Positions 1-52,507 of a stretch of 64,000 bases of DNA are shown in pieces. Numbering within the stretch: the stretch's first letter is position 1; the number at the start of each line of letters is the position of its first letter. Location of the stretch: NCBI RefSeq assembly GCF_006345805.1, contig NC_043008.1, forward strand, positions 46,314,001 to 46,378,000, given 5' to 3'. The position numbers and the translations under genes were made by a program. The notes beneath the pieces were generated by a model. That model did no database searches. It saw only the letters and a program-made list of their open reading frames with translations, and was not told the DNA's origin. Source of the stretch: Octopus sinensis (Eukaryota).

Positions 1-772
1 AACAAAACAAAAAATAAACTATATATACACCCATACACATATAACTAATTATATATAACCATATCTAAATACATACACTAAATCACACACCTATATATAT
101 ATCCCTATACATACACATAAAAACTTTCTAGGCAACGATAAATAAATAAAATAGCCAAATACTTCAACACAATACTTATTCATACTCCCTCACACACACA
201 TACAACCCACATTCCCGCTCTAGAAACGAACATCATTTAAAATTATGAATGGAGAAATAGAATAAATGGAATTAAGAATTATATTCACTTAGTAAAACAA
301 ACATTACTTAAAAATTATGAATGAAATAATGTAATAAAATAACAGACATCGTAAATAGACATAAATTACTACGAATTCTTTAATAAAACTACCATGATAA
401 ACTAATACTCATAAAAACATATAATGATAAAATATCCCTTTACTAAACTCTATAACATACCTATATAGCAATCCCCCTAACCTAAACATTCACACACAAA
501 TACACACACGTAAACCACACACCCACGACATATACAAATACCCACCTCACTCACACATACCTGTGGGTTGTATGTGTGTGTGAGGGAGTATGAATAAGTA
601 TTGTGTTGAAGTATTTGGCTATTTTATTTATTTATCGTTGCCTAGAAAGTTTTTATGTGTATGTATAGGGATATATATATAGGTGTGTGATTTAGTGTAT
701 GTATTTAGATATGGTTATATATAATTAGTTATATGTGTATGGGTGTATATATAGTTTATTTTTTGTTTTGTT
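1..772. repeat. Perfect inverted duplication, arms 1-211 and 562-772, 350-bp spacer; left arm probably continues beyond the window start
   Basis: 562-772 is the exact reverse complement of 1-211 (e.g. agccaaatacttcaacacaatac / gtattgtgttgaagtatttggct). Strand composition flips from AC-rich to GT-rich at 562. Confidence 0.95.
225..480 (+). pseudogene. Possible highly degraded C-terminal part of a Penelope-like GIY-YIG ORF
   Basis: Weak resemblance to PLE C-terminal motifs (HHLNYEW, FNK...KYP). Many stops; lies next to a hammerhead-bearing pLTR-like segment. Confidence 0.25.
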
Positions 773-956
773 TTATATTTTTATATTTAATTGTTGATAG
801 GTTTATTTTAGTTTATATATTGTTTATATATTGATTATATATGGATTATATATAGGTTATATATAGATTATATATTTATATTTTTTCATTAATACTTTAA
901 TTATTTTAAAATTATTATTTTTATATTTTAAAATATTGATATTTTAGATTGGAAGT

Positions 957-999
957 CCACCTGAAGATTGTCGATCAGGACAAGAAACAATTGTAGTGG
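957..999 (+). ncRNA. Minimal type I hammerhead ribozyme (PLE-type), predicted cleavage after GUA at 995
   Basis: CCAC-CUGAAGA-UUGUC(GAUCAG)GACAA-GAAAC-AAUU-GUA-GUGG. Complete core, 4-bp stem I, 5-bp stem II, 2-bp stem III within the self-complementary ACAAUUGU typical of dimeric PLE hammerheads. Confidence 0.85.
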
Positions 1000-1539
1000 C
1001 GGTTTTTTTGACTTTTTATTAAAATTTTATGTATTGATTAAGTCTTTCCTTGTTTGTTTTGCAAAATAGTGGTTTTGTCTCTAATAATATTATATAATAT
1101 TTTACTATAAAATTGGATTTAATCCTAAATCTGATTTTTTTTCCCTGTAAATTTGGATTTATTCCCTAATATTTATTATATATATATATATATATATATA
1201 TTATATATATATATATATATATATATATATATATATAATATATATATATATATATATATATATATATATATATATAATTTTGTTTCTTCCTTCTGCTTCC
1301 TTGCTTGGCTAACCCCAGTCAATTATTTATAAAAAGGGCAAGAAATCTAAATTTGAAACATTTTTTGATAAATCCGATAAGGGAAGAAAGCTCTAAAAAT
1401 GTAAATAAGATGTAAATAAAAAATATATATATAATCATCCAACATTCCTCATTATTCGAAATATACAATATCTACACAACACTTCAAAAACTCTCTCTCT
1501 CTCTCCCTCCCCCTCCATCTCTCTCATATGTATCTATGT

Positions 1540-2620
1540 ATATATGGCAAGAAACTTAAATGAACGAATGTACTTTCATTCTACATGAATCTAAAATGGA
1601 ATCGGGAAAGACACGACTATGTCTGTTTAATTCTATGGCTGTATGAGCTAAATTACTGAAGGACAGAAATTTGAATATTATAGAAGACCATATTGAGTTT
1701 ACAATGAAATTTAATCAGAAATAAGAGTCATTTCTAGACATTTTTTAATCGTGGAAAAATAGAATGAAATAACCACTACATACACATGGATTCGAAACTG
1801 TGTTTTCTTTGTACATCCTGCCATCCTGAACGTCCCAAATTAAACATTCTTTCCACCTTAACAGGATTCGCGCAATAGTTTTAAACTGACAGAACTAGAT
1901 CAAGAATTAGACCTTTGAAACAGACTAATTCAAAGAGTGTTTCTATTAAATAGTATTGTAAATGTACTGGAAAGGACAAAATGCTTAAGGCCCAATGATC
2001 TGACAGAAATAAATTGTTTTAACACCTCGTGTTTTAATCCCTCTACTTATAGAATTATTTAATAACATGCAATACAGCATCCCTACTCTTGAAAAAAATC
2101 CTAAAATCTATACAGAATCCAAGAAAATCAACATCAAAAACAAGGGGAAAATAAAAACTTTGAAGACCATTGTTTGGCAAGGGTTTTCAAACAAGGACCC
2201 AACCCCAAAATTACTAAATGTTTTAGACCAAATTATGATAGATGCCTGTACTTAAATGAAGGTTCGGTATTCACATTTAAGGACAAATCTTAAAAATAAA
2301 AGAAAAATTTTACTTGCAGCACCTAAAATTTGATTTACACCATAACATGCTGTGGATGCATGTATAAATCCATCGGACAAACTGGTTTATCGTTTCACAG
2401 GAGATTAACGGTGCACAAGAAACAAATAAATAATGAAAAACGAGAGGAAAATATCTTGAAGCGGACATATAGCTACATACAGTTTCCTATTTGTAATTCT
2501 TTCACATTCTAAATTAAATAGTCCGTATAATTTTCTAAAATGAAACACTCAGAATACAAGAGATTCCAAATATCGACGAGAAGAAAATTGTCAATAAAAG
2601 CGAATAGTTTCACTTGTATG
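1540..2620 (+). mobile_element. Degraded Penelope-like element (RT C-terminus plus GIY-YIG endonuclease)
   Basis: Broken frames give IEFTMKF..ESFLDI and SCHPERPKLNIL. ORF 2330-2512 gives IYTITCCGC.YKSIGQTGLSFHRRLTVHKKQI, the GIY-YIG signature of PLEs. Confidence 0.8.
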
Positions 2621-49420: not shown

Positions 49421-50479
49421 GACTTCCTCAGTGGTTACATGTCTGTGACTCTGTAACTATATATATATATATATATATATATATATATATATTATATATA
49501 TATATATATATATATATATATATACATATATATATATATATTATATATATATATATATATATATTATATATATATGAGATATTTTTGGCCTGGAATACAA
49601 TTCGGATACTGTAAGGTGTCAAACTAAAGCGGTTTTTTTAAAAAAGCAATCTAATCATTTTGAGACCCTACTTTCACAGAAGTATCAGCGTTACAGTAAA
49701 TTTTCAAAGATTGAGCGATTTAAAGAAATGGGGGAGTATACGTATCGAAGCAACTATGAAGATTAATGTAAGAAGGAGAGTCAGGGACAAAGAGGGGTCA
49801 TAGAAACATGTTCATAAACAAATGTAACTGAAGACAAAACTTAGACAATGATATACAAGCATGAGACGATGGTGTGTAAATGTTTAAGTGATACAGACAC
49901 AGAGACAAGACATAGTGTAAGAAAGTAAGCGAATCTGTTAGTGCAGGAATTTGATTGTAAAGATGCGATTTAATAAACTACATAATAAAGTATACTCGTA
50001 GAAAATTATGTCAAATAATGGCGAGAAATTTAGTGAGATATAATGGATGATATAATAGAAGATTGATAAAAGAGAACTGGATAAGTTAAAAGATGTAATT
50101 TGATACAAGTTAGTGAATTGTTGATGTGCGGTAAATATGAGAAACCAAATAATAAATAACACGAATAGAAAATAAATGGATAATATTATTTTTTATGATT
50201 AATAGTATTAACGATATACATTGGAGAAAACTGAAAGTAACGATTAGGAAATTATTTAAAGTGCTAATGGTATTAACGGTGTATATTAACAGCAAACATG
50301 ATTACATATACACAAACGTGCACACACGTATAAACCCATACAAGCACATATATGGGCCCATATATATAAATATATATATATATATATATATGAATGATAT
50401 ATAACCTTCATCCCATTCACATCTTAAATACTTTCTGAACAGTGTAATTGATCCCAAAAATTGTGTTAGGGAATCTATT

Positions 50480-51900
50480 CTTCGTCAAGACGCGTCAAAA
50501 AGCATTACGCAGAGGAAATTCTGAAAAGATGGGCGGAATATTTTAAATCATTATTACTCCAGGAATCCACTACCGATTTGAAAGCAACAAATGAAATCCT
50601 TCAGAAGCATATAATTGGGGAACTTTCAGAAGATATTTCACTGGAAAAAATAAGTACTGCTATGAAAAAAAAATGAAACAATTCAGTCGTAAAGCTCCTG
50701 GACACGATGGTATTCCCCAAAAGTGTAGAATCATGGTAGTAGGGCTGTTTGAATAAAAGCAGGGCGAATTATTCTGATTGAAGATCCTGCGTCCGTTTTC
50801 CACAAAGGTCAAAGATGTATCAATATCGCATTTGTGCAAAAATAAAGGGAAAACGAGTGCAGCTGATAATCGAAGGGAATAACTTTATTGTGCATTGCTG
50901 GCAAAATTCCTGCAAAGGTGATTCTTAACTGCATTAATATGCATGTAGTAAACAGACTATATCTTGAATCTTAATGTGGATTTTAGGCTGAGCGAGACAC
51001 AAGTCAAGAAAATCATTGACTTGTACATAGTCTTTCTCATTTTGACCAAGGCCTTTGTTACTGTGAATCGTGAGGTGCTCTGGAAAATTCTTGTCAAACG
51101 ATGGTCATCCTGATAATAGTAACTCTGCACGAAGGACTAATCTGTGACATTTTCTGTTGCTACAAGAATTAAACAGGGCTGTGTTATACTGCTCTACTGC
51201 TCTTCCATATTTCCGCTGATGCTCCAATTTGCTTTAATCGATTACTGTGAAGGTGTAAAATTTCAGTTTCGCACAAAAGGATGTCTCCTAAACCTAAACG
51301 GTTAAAGTTTGAGATCAAAGGAAAAGACCAAGGCAGAGACTCTACGTGGTTTCCTGTCTGCTAATGATTGTATTTTGAATTCTCATACGTTTGAGGAAAT
51401 TGATCAACCAGTCATTGTTTGCTACGGCAGCTCTTGTATTTGGATAAACCATCAACATCAACACGACTGAAGTATTATTCAGGAGACAGGATATACTCAA
51501 GATCCAAATGTGATGATTGACAATAAGCCACTGCAATGGGTCAGGTCCTTAAAATATGCTAGAAGTACAGTAAACTTCAAGACTAAAGCTACAAGTGCTT
51601 TAGGAAAATATTCCACTGTTTGTGGGGTGAATTCGGTGTCTAAAAATAAAATAGGTATCGAAATCTTGTATTTTGAGCACGCTTTTGTATGGTGGAGAGA
51701 CACAGATTACCAATTACAGACATAGAAAAGAACTAGAAACATTTCACATGTACTGTAAGTGTAGTAGCTGCAACATAAAAATGGCAAGGTAAGATACCAA
51801 AAGCATGCTACTGAGAATCGAGTGTAGGACGATAGGACATGTTCTTCAAATGGAAGATGATCACATTCCAAAATTTATTTTGTGTGACCAACAAGTAGAG
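50480..51900 (+). mobile_element. Heavily degraded RTE-clade LINE
   Basis: Fragments RWAEYF..LL, KAPGHDGIP, IAGKI.AKVILN, DLTKAF.TVNRE.LW, GIKQGCV, and the C-terminal GHV.QMEDD.IPK. Confidence 0.75.
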
Positions 51901-52375
51901 TGTTATTACAGTGAAAGAAGACTTTTCCTTTAAAATCTCGACAGCTTTGACATTTGAATTTTATAAATGCTTATCAATATAGTTTTTTATTATAGGGAGA
52001 GCACTCCTGTGAAACGATCTCTCAAAACTTAATTCAAAACTTTTAAACTGTAATATACATTATATATTTATACTTAAACATTTTTACATATATTTACATA
52101 TATTTATATTTTTAATACAACAATTATTTTACATACGTTTATATCTTTCTGAAGAGTTTTCTAATGCAGATTTCCTCATATTAATACTAATATATTATAT
52201 ATATATATATATATATATATATATATATAATATAGATATATACACACACACATATATATATATATATATATATATATATATATATATATAGATAGATAGA
52301 TAGATAGATAGATAGATAGATAGATAGATATAGATATATACATATATATATATATATATATATATATATATATAT

Positions 52376-52507
52376 ATTTATTATATAGAAGGAGCTTCTA
52401 CAGGACTAGAACTGTTTCATTCAAGAGAAATCTTCAGGAAGCTTCCTGAAGATTTCTCTTGAATGAAACAGTTCTAGTCCTGTAGAAGCTCCTTCTATAT
52501 AATAAAT
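52376..52507. repeat. Perfect spacer-less 132-bp palindrome (66-bp arms, centre AAG|CTT at 52441/52442)
   Basis: Base-by-base complementarity from 52376 to 52507. Confidence 0.97.
52440..52490 (+). ncRNA. Type I hammerhead ribozyme; identical mirror copy on the minus strand at 52393-52443
   Basis: AGCUUC-CUGAAGA-UUUC(UCUU)GAAU-GAAACAG-UUCUAGUC-CUGUA-GAAGCU. 6-bp stem I, full core, 3-bp stem II closed by a U-U mismatch, 4-bp stem III, cleavage after GUA at 52484. Confidence 0.7.

Follow-up and report, generated by a model that had tools for sequence, protein, structure and literature searches.

Fold-back structures with outward-facing hammerhead motifs in Octopus sinensis are probably insertion debris of Penelope-like elements

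Results

Inverted repeats in microsatellite-rich octopus DNA

The window analysed here is a 64,000-nt stretch of Octopus sinensis contig NC_043008.1. All three inverted repeats claimed in a preliminary description of this DNA were recovered (Table 1). The arms of site 1 are 100% complementary and separated by a 350-nt spacer, and the left arm is truncated by the window edge. Element 2 has arms that are 96.4% complementary, with 12 differences, around a spacer of 95 nt, and site 3 is a perfect 132-nt palindrome (52376-52507, arms 100%) centred at 52441|52442 in the sequence AAGCTT. Unit sizes are thus >772 nt for site 1, 765 nt for element 2 and 132 nt for site 3. Across the whole window there are four local non-microsatellite inverted repeats, amounting to ~2% of its length; three of the four are the units described here, and two of the four contain hammerhead-type motifs. 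TA-type microsatellites hold all three units, with (TA)n/(GATA)n arrays surrounding the site 3 palindrome. BLAST among the three units agreed with the earlier statement that they have no common sequence outside the ribozyme cores. Repetitiveness is a basic property of transposable elements, and the finding of no extra copies of any unit in the window or the searched collections counts against reading them as such. The reverse transcriptases adjacent to the units belong to CR1/L2-like and RTE/BovB-like LINEs, and we found no reverse transcriptase or GIY-YIG open reading frame of a Penelope-like element (PLE) in the window, which counts against a PLE origin. The window’s LINE reverse transcriptase is closest to that of Argonauta hians, with which dispersed repeats are also in common.

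Table 1. Features of the three fold-back loci, in window coordinates
Feature	Position	Strand	Basis or detail	Reading
Site 1 left arm	1..211	-	100% inverted repeat; G-poor, 1.9% G; cut by window start	Interpreted as part of a longer, minus-sense copy
Site 1 ‘spacer’	212..561	-	6.9% G, G-poor like left arm	Would be extra 5′ sequence retained by the left copy alone; head-to-head junction at 561|562
Site 1 right arm	562..772	+	Inverted repeat; C-poor, 1.9% C	
C-poor tract	773..956	+	1.1% C; extends right-arm composition as far as the hammerhead	Probably still within the right copy, with its mirror left of the window start
Canonical minimal type-I hammerhead	957..999	+	Descriptor and shuffles; dimer fold; Rfam silent	
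(TATATATG)n-type microsatellite, left flank of element 2	39105..39549		Sequence repeat	Presumed insertion target of element 2
Unique 116-nt segment, microsatellite to left end of element 2	39551..39666			May be target remnant or one-sided extension
Element 2 left arm, 335-nt 3′-terminal fragment	39667..40001	- (minus-sense)		
Intact type-I hammerhead, element 2 left arm	39701..39790	-	Descriptor, dimer fold	
Element 2 central spacer, 95 nt	40002..40096			Would be extra 5′ sequence of one of two unequally truncated copies
Element 2 right arm, same 335-nt 3′-terminal fragment	40097..40431	+ (plus-sense)	12 differences from left arm	
Degenerate hammerhead copy, element 2 right arm	40308..40397	+	Descriptor passed only with one mismatch allowed	
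(TA/TATG)n microsatellite, right flank of element 2	40433..40608			
Hammerhead-like core, site 3 right arm	52446..52476	+	Fails descriptor; related to site-1 motif	

Two canonical hammerheads and two degraded relatives

Hammerheads were sought with a descriptor requiring CUGANGA, helix II, GAAA, an A..U helix III, H and helix I. Exactly two canonical type-I hammerheads matched in the window, 957-999(+) at site 1 and 39701-39790(-) in the left arm of element 2, whereas dinucleotide shuffles predict 0.09 matches per window (0.005 at the strict setting). These two bear out part of the hammerhead claim made earlier; of the others, the element 2 right-arm copy is degenerate and the site 3 motif fails the descriptor. 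Within fold-back arms, an intact ribozyme is found in one arm of one fold-back, the left arm of element 2.

The site 1 motif reads CCAC / CUGAAGA / UUGUC-GAUCAG-GACAA / GAA / ACAAUUGU / A|GUGG, forming a helix I of 4 bp, a helix II of 5 bp and a helix III of 2 bp with an AAUU loop, and cleavage is predicted at 995|996. Its 10.1-11.1 pair is U-A, atypical against the conserved G-C, which counts against a PLE origin. The element 2 left-arm motif has G10.1-C11.1, a 6-bp helix I and a 7-bp helix II with a ~50-nt structured insert, and its H17 at 39707 is followed by a 40-nt tail to the element end at 39667. Both canonical motifs have the identical 8-nt helix III palindrome, their helices I and II covary completely, and they have in common a 12-mer, GAAACAATTGTA, with zero-mismatch occurrences nowhere else in the window. 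Two copies of either motif were predicted to pair into a double hammerhead in which an 8-bp helix III joins the two molecules and helix I forms in trans, at a predicted gain of about -9 kcal/mol. This suggests that both intact motifs are dimer-dependent, adopting the double-hammerhead fold only when dimeric, and they agree with metazoan PLE hammerheads as defined in the literature, which are minimal type-I and dimeric (PMC4209133).

Could such motifs be chance matches in AT-rich sequence? Rfam returned 0 hammerheads at its gathering score, and likewise when the isolated regions were searched at E<=10. Bare CUGANGA-N7-20-GAAA cores occurred at four independent loci versus 1.8 +/- 1.4 in shuffles; the additional core loci 12532-12564 and 6700-6778 lack helices. 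The excess of full-descriptor matches over the shuffled expectation, the complete covariation with an identical helix III palindrome and the predicted dimer folds that reproduce the double hammerhead nevertheless make a chance origin extremely unlikely.

The two remaining motifs are degraded. The element 2 right-arm copy has a C.A mismatch in helix II at 10.2/11.2 and has lost the helix III palindrome because its loop is AUUU, and its H17 at 40391 precedes a 40-nt tail to 40431. The site 3 core, CUGAAGA-UUUCUCUUGAAU-GAAACAGUUCUA, has a minus-strand mirror copy at 52437-52407 and fails even a relaxed descriptor: its 10.1/11.1 position is a U.U, the helix III palindrome is broken, and helix I is missing because the arm begins 4 nt upstream. 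Alignment with the site 1 motif gave a score of 26 versus 15.5 +/- 2.5 by chance (p ~0.002). As described earlier, minus-strand motifs lie in left arms and plus-strand motifs in right arms, facing outward in two of two cases. Mirrored orientation is automatic in any inverted repeat, and therefore only the choice of outward over inward is informative.

Head-to-head geometry of the three units

With moderate confidence, we read the fold-backs as insertions that were dead on arrival, left by hammerhead-bearing PLEs or by non-coding derivatives that depend on PLEs; two or more unrelated families would be represented. For this we take the motifs, geometry, predicted folds and microsatellite context from the window itself, and the link to PLE enzymology from the literature. 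PLE insertions are biased toward TA-type microsatellites, commonly have an adjacent inverted 5′-truncated copy, and carry a 3′ hammerhead and a 30-40 bp tail (PMC8557442), the tail and hammerhead being placed near the PLE 3′ end (PMC8557442; PMC11167929). The PLE protein cuts and extends each of the two target strands (PMC11167929), and octopus genomes contain many Penelope elements, which have expanded there (PMC13282606, PMC8967140). At the loci described here, the enzyme would have cut a (TA)n-type target on both strands and primed reverse transcription from each, with two cDNA copies extending inward from the element 3′ end and stopping early, that is, with 5′ truncation. The outcome would be a head-to-head inverted pair with 3′ ends outward, each end carrying its pLTR hammerhead and then a 30-40-nt tail, and unequal truncation of the two copies would leave a ‘spacer’ between them. 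Element 2 has 40/40 nt between cleavage site and outer end, and site 3 has 31/31 nt, distances consistent with the published tail and near-3′ hammerhead. The earlier proposal of two inverted pLTR-type PLE ends is thus a good fit to element 2 and a plausible one to sites 1 and 3.

Element 2 (39667-40431) is the clear head-to-head case, its arms being ~3.6% divergent with one ribozyme canonical and the other decaying. It is also non-coding, AT-rich and nearly all inverted repeat over 765 bp, as might be expected of a foldback/MITE-type DNA transposon with very long TIRs and a captured or ancestral hammerhead sequence. However, the flanks have only the dinucleotide AC in common and hold no convincing target-site duplication, no subrepeats were found in the arms, and the window contains no further copy. 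Moreover, both termini have an outward dimeric hammerhead of the PLE type at a distance of exactly 40 nt, as a head-to-head retro-copy predicts, and we regard the transposon alternative as very improbable.

Site 1 is probably a third head-to-head case, with the right copy running from 562 to ~1035 through the hammerhead and the mirror half outside the window. The sequence is C-poor throughout 562-956, and this compositional bias changes strand at 561|562; the hammerhead lies outside the visible repeat, 185 nt beyond the last paired base. Site 3, with a predicted fold of a 64-bp hairpin at -109 kcal/mol, would be the same kind of insertion product from a degenerate relative of the site 1 motif, cut to 66 nt per arm, a truncation that would account for the missing helix I. 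Alternatively, assembly could have created 1-772 and 52376-52507 as fold-back artefacts, or they could be local inverted duplications of very recent date in unstable microsatellite DNA; hammerheads would then be close to them incidentally, leaving element 2 as the only true retroelement structure. The 100% arm identity of both repeats, their low-complexity, microsatellite-rich setting, the position of the site 1 hammerhead beyond the visible arm and the structural failure of the site 3 motif are all in keeping with this. Against it, the site 3 arm aligns with the site 1 hammerhead and its core leaves 31 nt to the outer end, paralleling element 2, and the asymmetric spacer of site 1, with a composition that continues to the hammerhead, is atypical of a chimeric-read fold-back. 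We therefore judge it unlikely.

Self-cleavage and the idea of a palindromic ribozyme class

The preliminary description envisaged transcripts forming a long hairpin that ends in a self-cleavage site. In the predicted fold of a read-through transcript of element 2, however, the ribozyme nucleotides are fully paired within a 335-bp stem (-531 kcal/mol), and the motifs need a second sense copy. An inverted pair supplies one sense copy per transcript, locked in the hairpin, and so the fold-backs would not be expected to act as self-cleaving units. Roles of the hairpins as dsRNA, small-RNA source or ADAR substrate are possible independently of the ribozyme.

The same considerations bear on a distinct non-autonomous class of two inverted pLTRs, whose hairpin transcripts would be processed by hammerheads and mobilised whole by PLE enzymes. 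Outward hammerhead-type motifs occur in both arms of two fold-backs, the association of inverted repeats with such motifs is non-random, and retrozymes are existing non-autonomous PLE derivatives (10.64898/2026.07.22.740005). Set against this are the absence of common sequence among three units of very unequal size, an intact ribozyme in just one arm across three structures, its sequestration in the hairpin, a dimer-type motif deprived of a second sense copy, and the lack of target-site duplication or additional copies. Such products are also already predicted by the known PLE insertion mechanism: inverted 5′-truncated copies are a textbook outcome (PMC8557442), explained by cleavage and extension of both strands (PMC11167929), which makes a new mobile class unnecessary. 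We saw no sign of the fold-backs moving as units and find the proposed class quite improbable; as PLE insertion debris, the fold-backs are a known kind of structure.

Discussion

Several known systems resemble these loci in part. In L1 twin-priming inversions, the second target strand likewise serves as primer, giving an inverted segment and 5′ truncation, but there the inverted segment comes from another, more 5′ region of a single RNA, so that the 3′ end itself is not duplicated as an inverted repeat. Both arms here are the same 3′-terminal sequence, which points to two templates or to a 3′ site used twice for initiation. Long-TIR MITEs and foldback elements are similarly non-coding, nearly all inverted repeat and able to form long hairpins; they differ in target-site duplication and subrepeat structure, neither of which was seen here, and ribozymes facing outward at a fixed distance from the termini argue for retro-copying rather than cut-and-paste transposition.

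Metazoan non-LTR retrozymes consist of repeats of 150-450 bp in tandem that bear type-I hammerheads and give rise to circular RNAs. Like the units described here, they are short, non-coding and AT-rich with a type-I hammerhead, and they are thought to depend on PLE enzymes. Their head-to-tail arrangement places at least two sense ribozymes in each transcript and so permits monomer release, whereas the units here are inverted or solitary, with no monomer that could be excised or circularised.

Unlike PLE insertions (Penelope/Poseidon, Neptune and related clades), these loci lack both a reverse transcriptase/GIY-YIG ORF and a direct pLTR and retain just two short 3′ ends; the ~50-nt helix II insert of element 2 is unusually long, and the U-A at 10.1/11.1 of site 1 departs from the PLE pattern. 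The likeness to PLE insertions is one of motif and geometry, and no named PLE family could be tied to the loci by sequence. It comprises a hammerhead of the minimal type-I form, which has a helix III of 2 bp and a palindromic loop and is predicted to act as a dimer; the placement of that hammerhead close to the 3′ end, with a tail of 30-40 nt after it; extensive 5′ truncation; inverted repeats formed by head-to-head copies; and (TA)n-type microsatellite targets.

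Three fold-back loci in an AT-rich, microsatellite-rich window

The window is AT-rich (about 29–46% GC per 4-kb window, mostly near 33%), and (TA)n, (TATG)n and (GATA)n arrays are abundant across it. The preliminary description had claimed three inverted repeats here, and sequence analysis of the window found all of them as described: site 1, at the left edge, where a hammerhead lies outside the visible right arm; element 2, a fold-back with a hammerhead copy in each arm; and site 3, a short palindrome with a hammerhead-like core (see the table of features). The left arm of site 1 may be longer than its visible part, as it starts at the window's first base. 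Dust-masked self-comparison of the window returned just one further local high-identity inverted repeat. This fourth repeat, 30532–30601/31545–31615 (71 nt, 90% identity, 944 nt apart), lies within a LINE remnant and alone among the local non-microsatellite inverted repeats has no hammerhead-type motif. The perfect identity of the arms at sites 1 and 3 is what an assembly error or a very recent duplication would leave, and either may have produced these two loci; if the genome is octopod, the 100%-identical cases would suggest recent activity of Penelope-like elements (PLEs) there.

Features of the window, with coordinates and strand
Feature	Coordinates	Strand	Details
Site 1 inverted repeat	arms 1–211, 562–772		100% complementary; spacer 350 nt
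Site-1 hammerhead	957–999	+	helix I 4 bp, helix II 5 bp
LTR-type reverse-transcriptase fragment	23737–23970		
LINE remnant	29475–31619	+	AP endonuclease and reverse-transcriptase fragments
CR1/L2-like LINE	ORF 36604–39020; element 36900–39100	+	5'-truncated; RT motifs including YADD
Element 2 inverted repeat	arms 39667–40001, 40097–40431		335 nt, 12 differences; spacer 95 nt
Element-2 left-arm hammerhead	39701–39790	-	helix I 6 bp, helix II 7 bp
Site 3	52376–52507		perfect palindrome, 132 nt
RTE/BovB-like LINE fragment	52869–54211	-	ended within the YADD region by a microsatellite
LINE remnant at the window's right edge	61659–63999	+	ORF with CCHC zinc knuckle, then AP endonuclease start

Two hammerheads are canonical and predicted to act as dimers

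Rfam covariance models detected no hammerhead, whether at the gathering score, at E≤10 across the whole window or at E≤10 on the isolated sites. Minimal PLE hammerheads were first detected by dedicated descriptors rather than by these models (PMC4209133). Since Rfam was silent, we defined the type-I motif in an explicit descriptor (helix I, CUGANGA, helix II, GAA, A15.1...U16.1, H17, helix I) in which helices I and II each have at least 4 bp and helix I is open-ended. The Rfam table for the window consists mostly of miRNA-like matches to palindromic microsatellites. Its top scores fall on the (CA)n(TA)n(TG)n compound palindromes at 34715–34796 and 34970–35057 (mir-3149, 80 bits, and mir-1277, 66 bits, both below the gathering score); miRNA genes at these positions were rejected as low-complexity artefacts.

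The strict descriptor matched exactly two loci in the window, the hammerhead of site 1 and that of the left arm of element 2, compared with 0.09 matches per window in dinucleotide shuffles, or 0.005 with stricter stem lengths. Allowing one mismatch per helix added the right arm of element 2 alone (shuffle mean 0.16), where helices I and II reach the required length only with that tolerance. The type-I conserved core (C3-U-G-A-N-G-A9, G12-A-A14, A15.1...U16.1, H17) is present at 961–995(+), 39784–39707(-), 40314–40391(+) and 52446–52476(+) plus its mirror. Helix I of the two clean motifs is unrelated in sequence (CCAC/GUGG in site 1, UUUUGG/CCGAAA in element 2), as is helix II (UUGUC/GACAA, and GUACG/CGUAC plus an insert). 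A 12-mer, GAAACAAUUGUA, is identical in both and has zero-mismatch copies nowhere else in the window. Helix III of both is the 8-nt palindrome ACAAUUGU, which neither the right arm of element 2 (ACAUUUGU) nor site 3 (ACAGUUCU) retains. The 10.1/11.1 pair, conserved as G10.1-C11.1 in PLE-type hammerheads, is G-C in element 2, U-A in site 1 and U.U in site 3.

Predicted folding of the monomers did not prefer the hammerhead for either clean RNA. For the homodimer of each, the predicted minimum-energy cofold is a classical double hammerhead, in which an intermolecular helix III of 8 bp and a trans-paired helix I join the two RNAs, each strand forms its own helix II and the cores stay unpaired; it is about 9 kcal/mol better than two monomers. 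Metazoan PLE hammerheads have a helix III of 1–2 bp with a small palindromic loop and act as dimers (PMC4209133); as modelled, the dimers of site 1 and the left arm of element 2 have this published architecture. The right copy of element 2 carries a C.A mismatch at 10.2/11.2 and the loop AUUU, and its predicted dimer lacks the double hammerhead. Thus the overall observation in the preliminary description, inverted repeats carrying hammerheads, holds for the repeats and in part for the ribozymes: two are canonical, the right copy of element 2 is degenerate and site 3 fails the descriptor.

Two other positions, 12532–12564(-) and 6700–6778(-), combine CUGACGA with the 12-mer at no more than two mismatches from GAAACAATTGTA; about 0.07–0.2 such co-occurrences are expected by chance. 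Because they lack helices I and II, they are decayed hammerhead relics at best, or chance. A further near-match to the 12-mer, at 16671, was dismissed as it has no core upstream.

Site 3 resembles a degenerate relative of the site-1 motif

The core of site 3 reads CUGAAGA-N12-GAAAC. It has no helix I (the C-G pair 1.1/2.1 alone), U.U at the base of helix II and a non-palindromic helix III, and it was missed by every version of the structural descriptor, the relaxed one included. Four independent loci carry a bare core of this type, whereas shuffles give 1.8 ± 1.4. The entire region is predicted to fold as a 64-bp hairpin (-109 kcal/mol), with the centre of the palindrome 4 nt upstream of the core; in Rfam the palindrome scores 64 bits against mir-3199. 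One arm aligns with the site-1 motif (CCUGAAGAUU...GAAACAnUUnUAGU) with a score of 26; shuffled sequences reach 15.5 ± 2.5 (p about 0.002). Judging from this alignment, we read site 3, rather than as a ribozyme, as a probable degenerate relative of the site-1 motif that has lost the 5' strand of helix I by truncation.

Geometry and insertion context point to probable PLE double insertions

In both complete fold-backs, element 2 and site 3, the sense strand of the motif faces outward. The mirror relation is automatic in any inverted repeat, so the informative part is "outward" alone, in two of two. More telling is that the predicted cleavage site lies at a constant distance from the outer end, 40 nt on both sides of element 2 and 31 nt on both sides of site 3. 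In PLEs the hammerhead is part of the terminal repeat (pLTR), close to the 3' end and ahead of a 30–40 bp tail, and the preferred targets are (TA)n (PMC8557442). The hammerhead near the 3' end with such a tail is found in element 2 and site 3, and (TA)n-type microsatellite context at all three loci: element 2 lies between (TATATATG)n-type arrays at 39105–39549 and 40433–40608, the left one separated from it by a unique segment of 116 nt, site 3 is flanked by (TA)n/(GATA)n blocks and the site-1 hammerhead by AT-rich arrays. PLE insertions are, moreover, heavily 5'-truncated and often accompanied by an inverted 5'-truncated copy, which yields inverted repeats (PMC8557442); such head-to-head pairs are seen here, with asymmetric spacers in element 2 and site 1. 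The PLE link drawn in the preliminary description is therefore supported by minimal dimer-type hammerheads, outward geometry, tail distances and TA-type microsatellites.

A foldback or MITE DNA transposon would also present inverted arms, but is unlikely for element 2, whose flanks show no target-site duplication and have only AC in common. The flanks of site 3 are TA-rich and uninformative on this point.

A purified PLE protein cuts and extends both target strands, and initiates reverse transcription internally, which explains the tail (PMC11167929). Two cDNAs primed from both target strands would grow inward from the 3' end. The outcome would be identical 3'-terminal sequence in both arms, with 3' ends and hammerheads outward at a constant hammerhead-to-end distance; arms would vary in length (66, 335 and at least 211 nt), and the spacer would be asymmetric where one copy had extended further. 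A two-strand-primed origin of these loci is our inference from this literature. An arm length that varies between 66 and at least 335 nt (or about 474 nt, should site 1 conform to the model), together with a steady hammerhead-to-end distance of 31–40 nt, agrees with the biochemical model in which initiation is internal and both strands are primed.

Composition of site 1 and differences between the arms of element 2

On the plus strand site 1 has 1.9–6.9% G over 1–561 and 1.1–1.9% C over 562–956, with ordinary composition from the hammerhead onward. This places the strand switch at 561|562 and not at the geometric centre of the repeat. The C-poor tract extends beyond the visible right arm up to the hammerhead. 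Site 1 is thus consistent with two copies whose 5' ends are unequal: the left one would be 350 nt longer, and the right one would start at 562, include the hammerhead and stop near 1035. The mirror half would then fall beyond the left edge of the window. Over 1–956 the presumed sense strand is nearly C-free up to the hammerhead, and much of it is not simple microsatellite; cryptically simple TG/TA sequence or C-to-T hypermutation may account for the asymmetry.

Among the 12 differences between the arms of element 2, six consecutive ones are all T in the left copy (sense strand) and C in the right. The run spans 51 nt across the ribozyme (39741–39791/40307–40357, arm alignment columns 220–270), and a permutation estimate for a contiguous same-type run is about 0.008. 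Several of these differences turn G.U into G-C pairs, and one alone lies within CpG. Deamination, editing and family polymorphism are candidate causes.

Search for a PLE partner and further copies

Pfam scans of 30 ORF fragments across the window found no GIY-YIG domain, only LINE- or LTR-type reverse transcriptase, AP endonuclease and zf-CCHC. PLE copies with heavy 5' truncation would not be expected to retain the reverse transcriptase/GIY-YIG ORF. The neighbouring reverse transcriptases were ruled out as PLE partners, both being LINEs by motifs and Pfam. The CR1/L2-like LINE has one frameshift near 38490, and its (AATC)n tail directly precedes the microsatellite flanking element 2. The RTE/BovB-like fragment, some 360 nt away from the site-3 palindrome, bears no relation to it.

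The abundant, lineage-expanded retroelements of octopus genomes include Penelope, CR1, RTE-BovB and Dong-R4 (PMC13282606, PMC8967140). The closest named relatives of the CR1-like reverse transcriptase are from Argonauta hians (56–59% identity), with other relatives at 67–77%, and the window shares short dispersed repeats with Argonauta DNA at about 80% identity, which makes an octopod-like cephalopod the probable source. Two of about 90–150 nt, 45109–45199 and 9691–9837, match multiple copies on one chromosome of Argonauta hians at 75–81% identity; they probably belong to a SINE-like family of octopods and are a useful lineage marker. No hammerheads and no homologues of the fold-backs were found in 43 kb of Argonauta hians DNA around the related LINEs.

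Inside the window no extra copies of the units were found, with low-complexity matches alone. Collections of prokaryotic genomes and viral contigs gave zero matches to the signatures of element 2, site 1 and site 3, and a 65-aa pseudo-ORF along the element-2 arm had no matches in a protein-space search. A metagenome scan with the element-2 ribozyme pattern returned a single contig (48.5% GC, prokaryote-like) with no similarity beyond the pattern, which we regard as a chance match.

Fold-back transcripts and relation to known elements

A read-through RNA of element 2 is predicted to form a single 335-bp hairpin (-531 kcal/mol) whose stem pairs the whole ribozyme with its complement, nucleotide for nucleotide; site 3 is predicted to behave likewise. 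Such a transcript holds one sense hammerhead, and the motif is predicted to need two. With the ribozyme buried in the stem and the second sense copy missing, self-cleavage is unlikely, which speaks against the earlier picture of a hairpin ending in a self-cleavage site. The fold-back hairpins could nevertheless be double-stranded RNA substrates, without involvement of the ribozyme.

Cleavage by the hammerhead is dispensable for PLE insertion in vitro (PMC11167929). We give very little credence to a bolder proposal, in which the hammerhead is not a mere passenger: its palindromic helix III and helix I in trans would pair two antiparallel template RNAs in a dimeric PLE ribonucleoprotein, priming on the two target strands would be simultaneous, and fold-backs of symmetric shape would be a direct, ribozyme-templated product. 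If true, the fold-backs would regularly supply long double-stranded RNA in a cephalopod genome rich in ADAR. In a weaker variant, the fold-back units themselves may be re-mobilised as non-autonomous elements.

For annotation, a CUGANGA...GAAA core close to both outer ends of a short fold-back in a microsatellite-rich invertebrate genome allows the fold-back to be identified as a PLE-type double insertion, with no need to label it a new element, a miRNA-like hairpin or an assembly error. Known retrozymes are head-to-tail tandem repeats of 150–450 bp, each with a hammerhead, and the units here are not so arranged: a metazoan non-LTR retrozyme was rejected, as the window holds no tandem array of units and no second direct copy. 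Nor is there support for a new class of palindromic ribozyme elements made of two inverted pLTRs, as first proposed, since the geometry matches published PLE insertion products. These fold-backs leave the current understanding of ribozymes and retroelements unchanged and are best filed as further examples of an already known type of insertion product.
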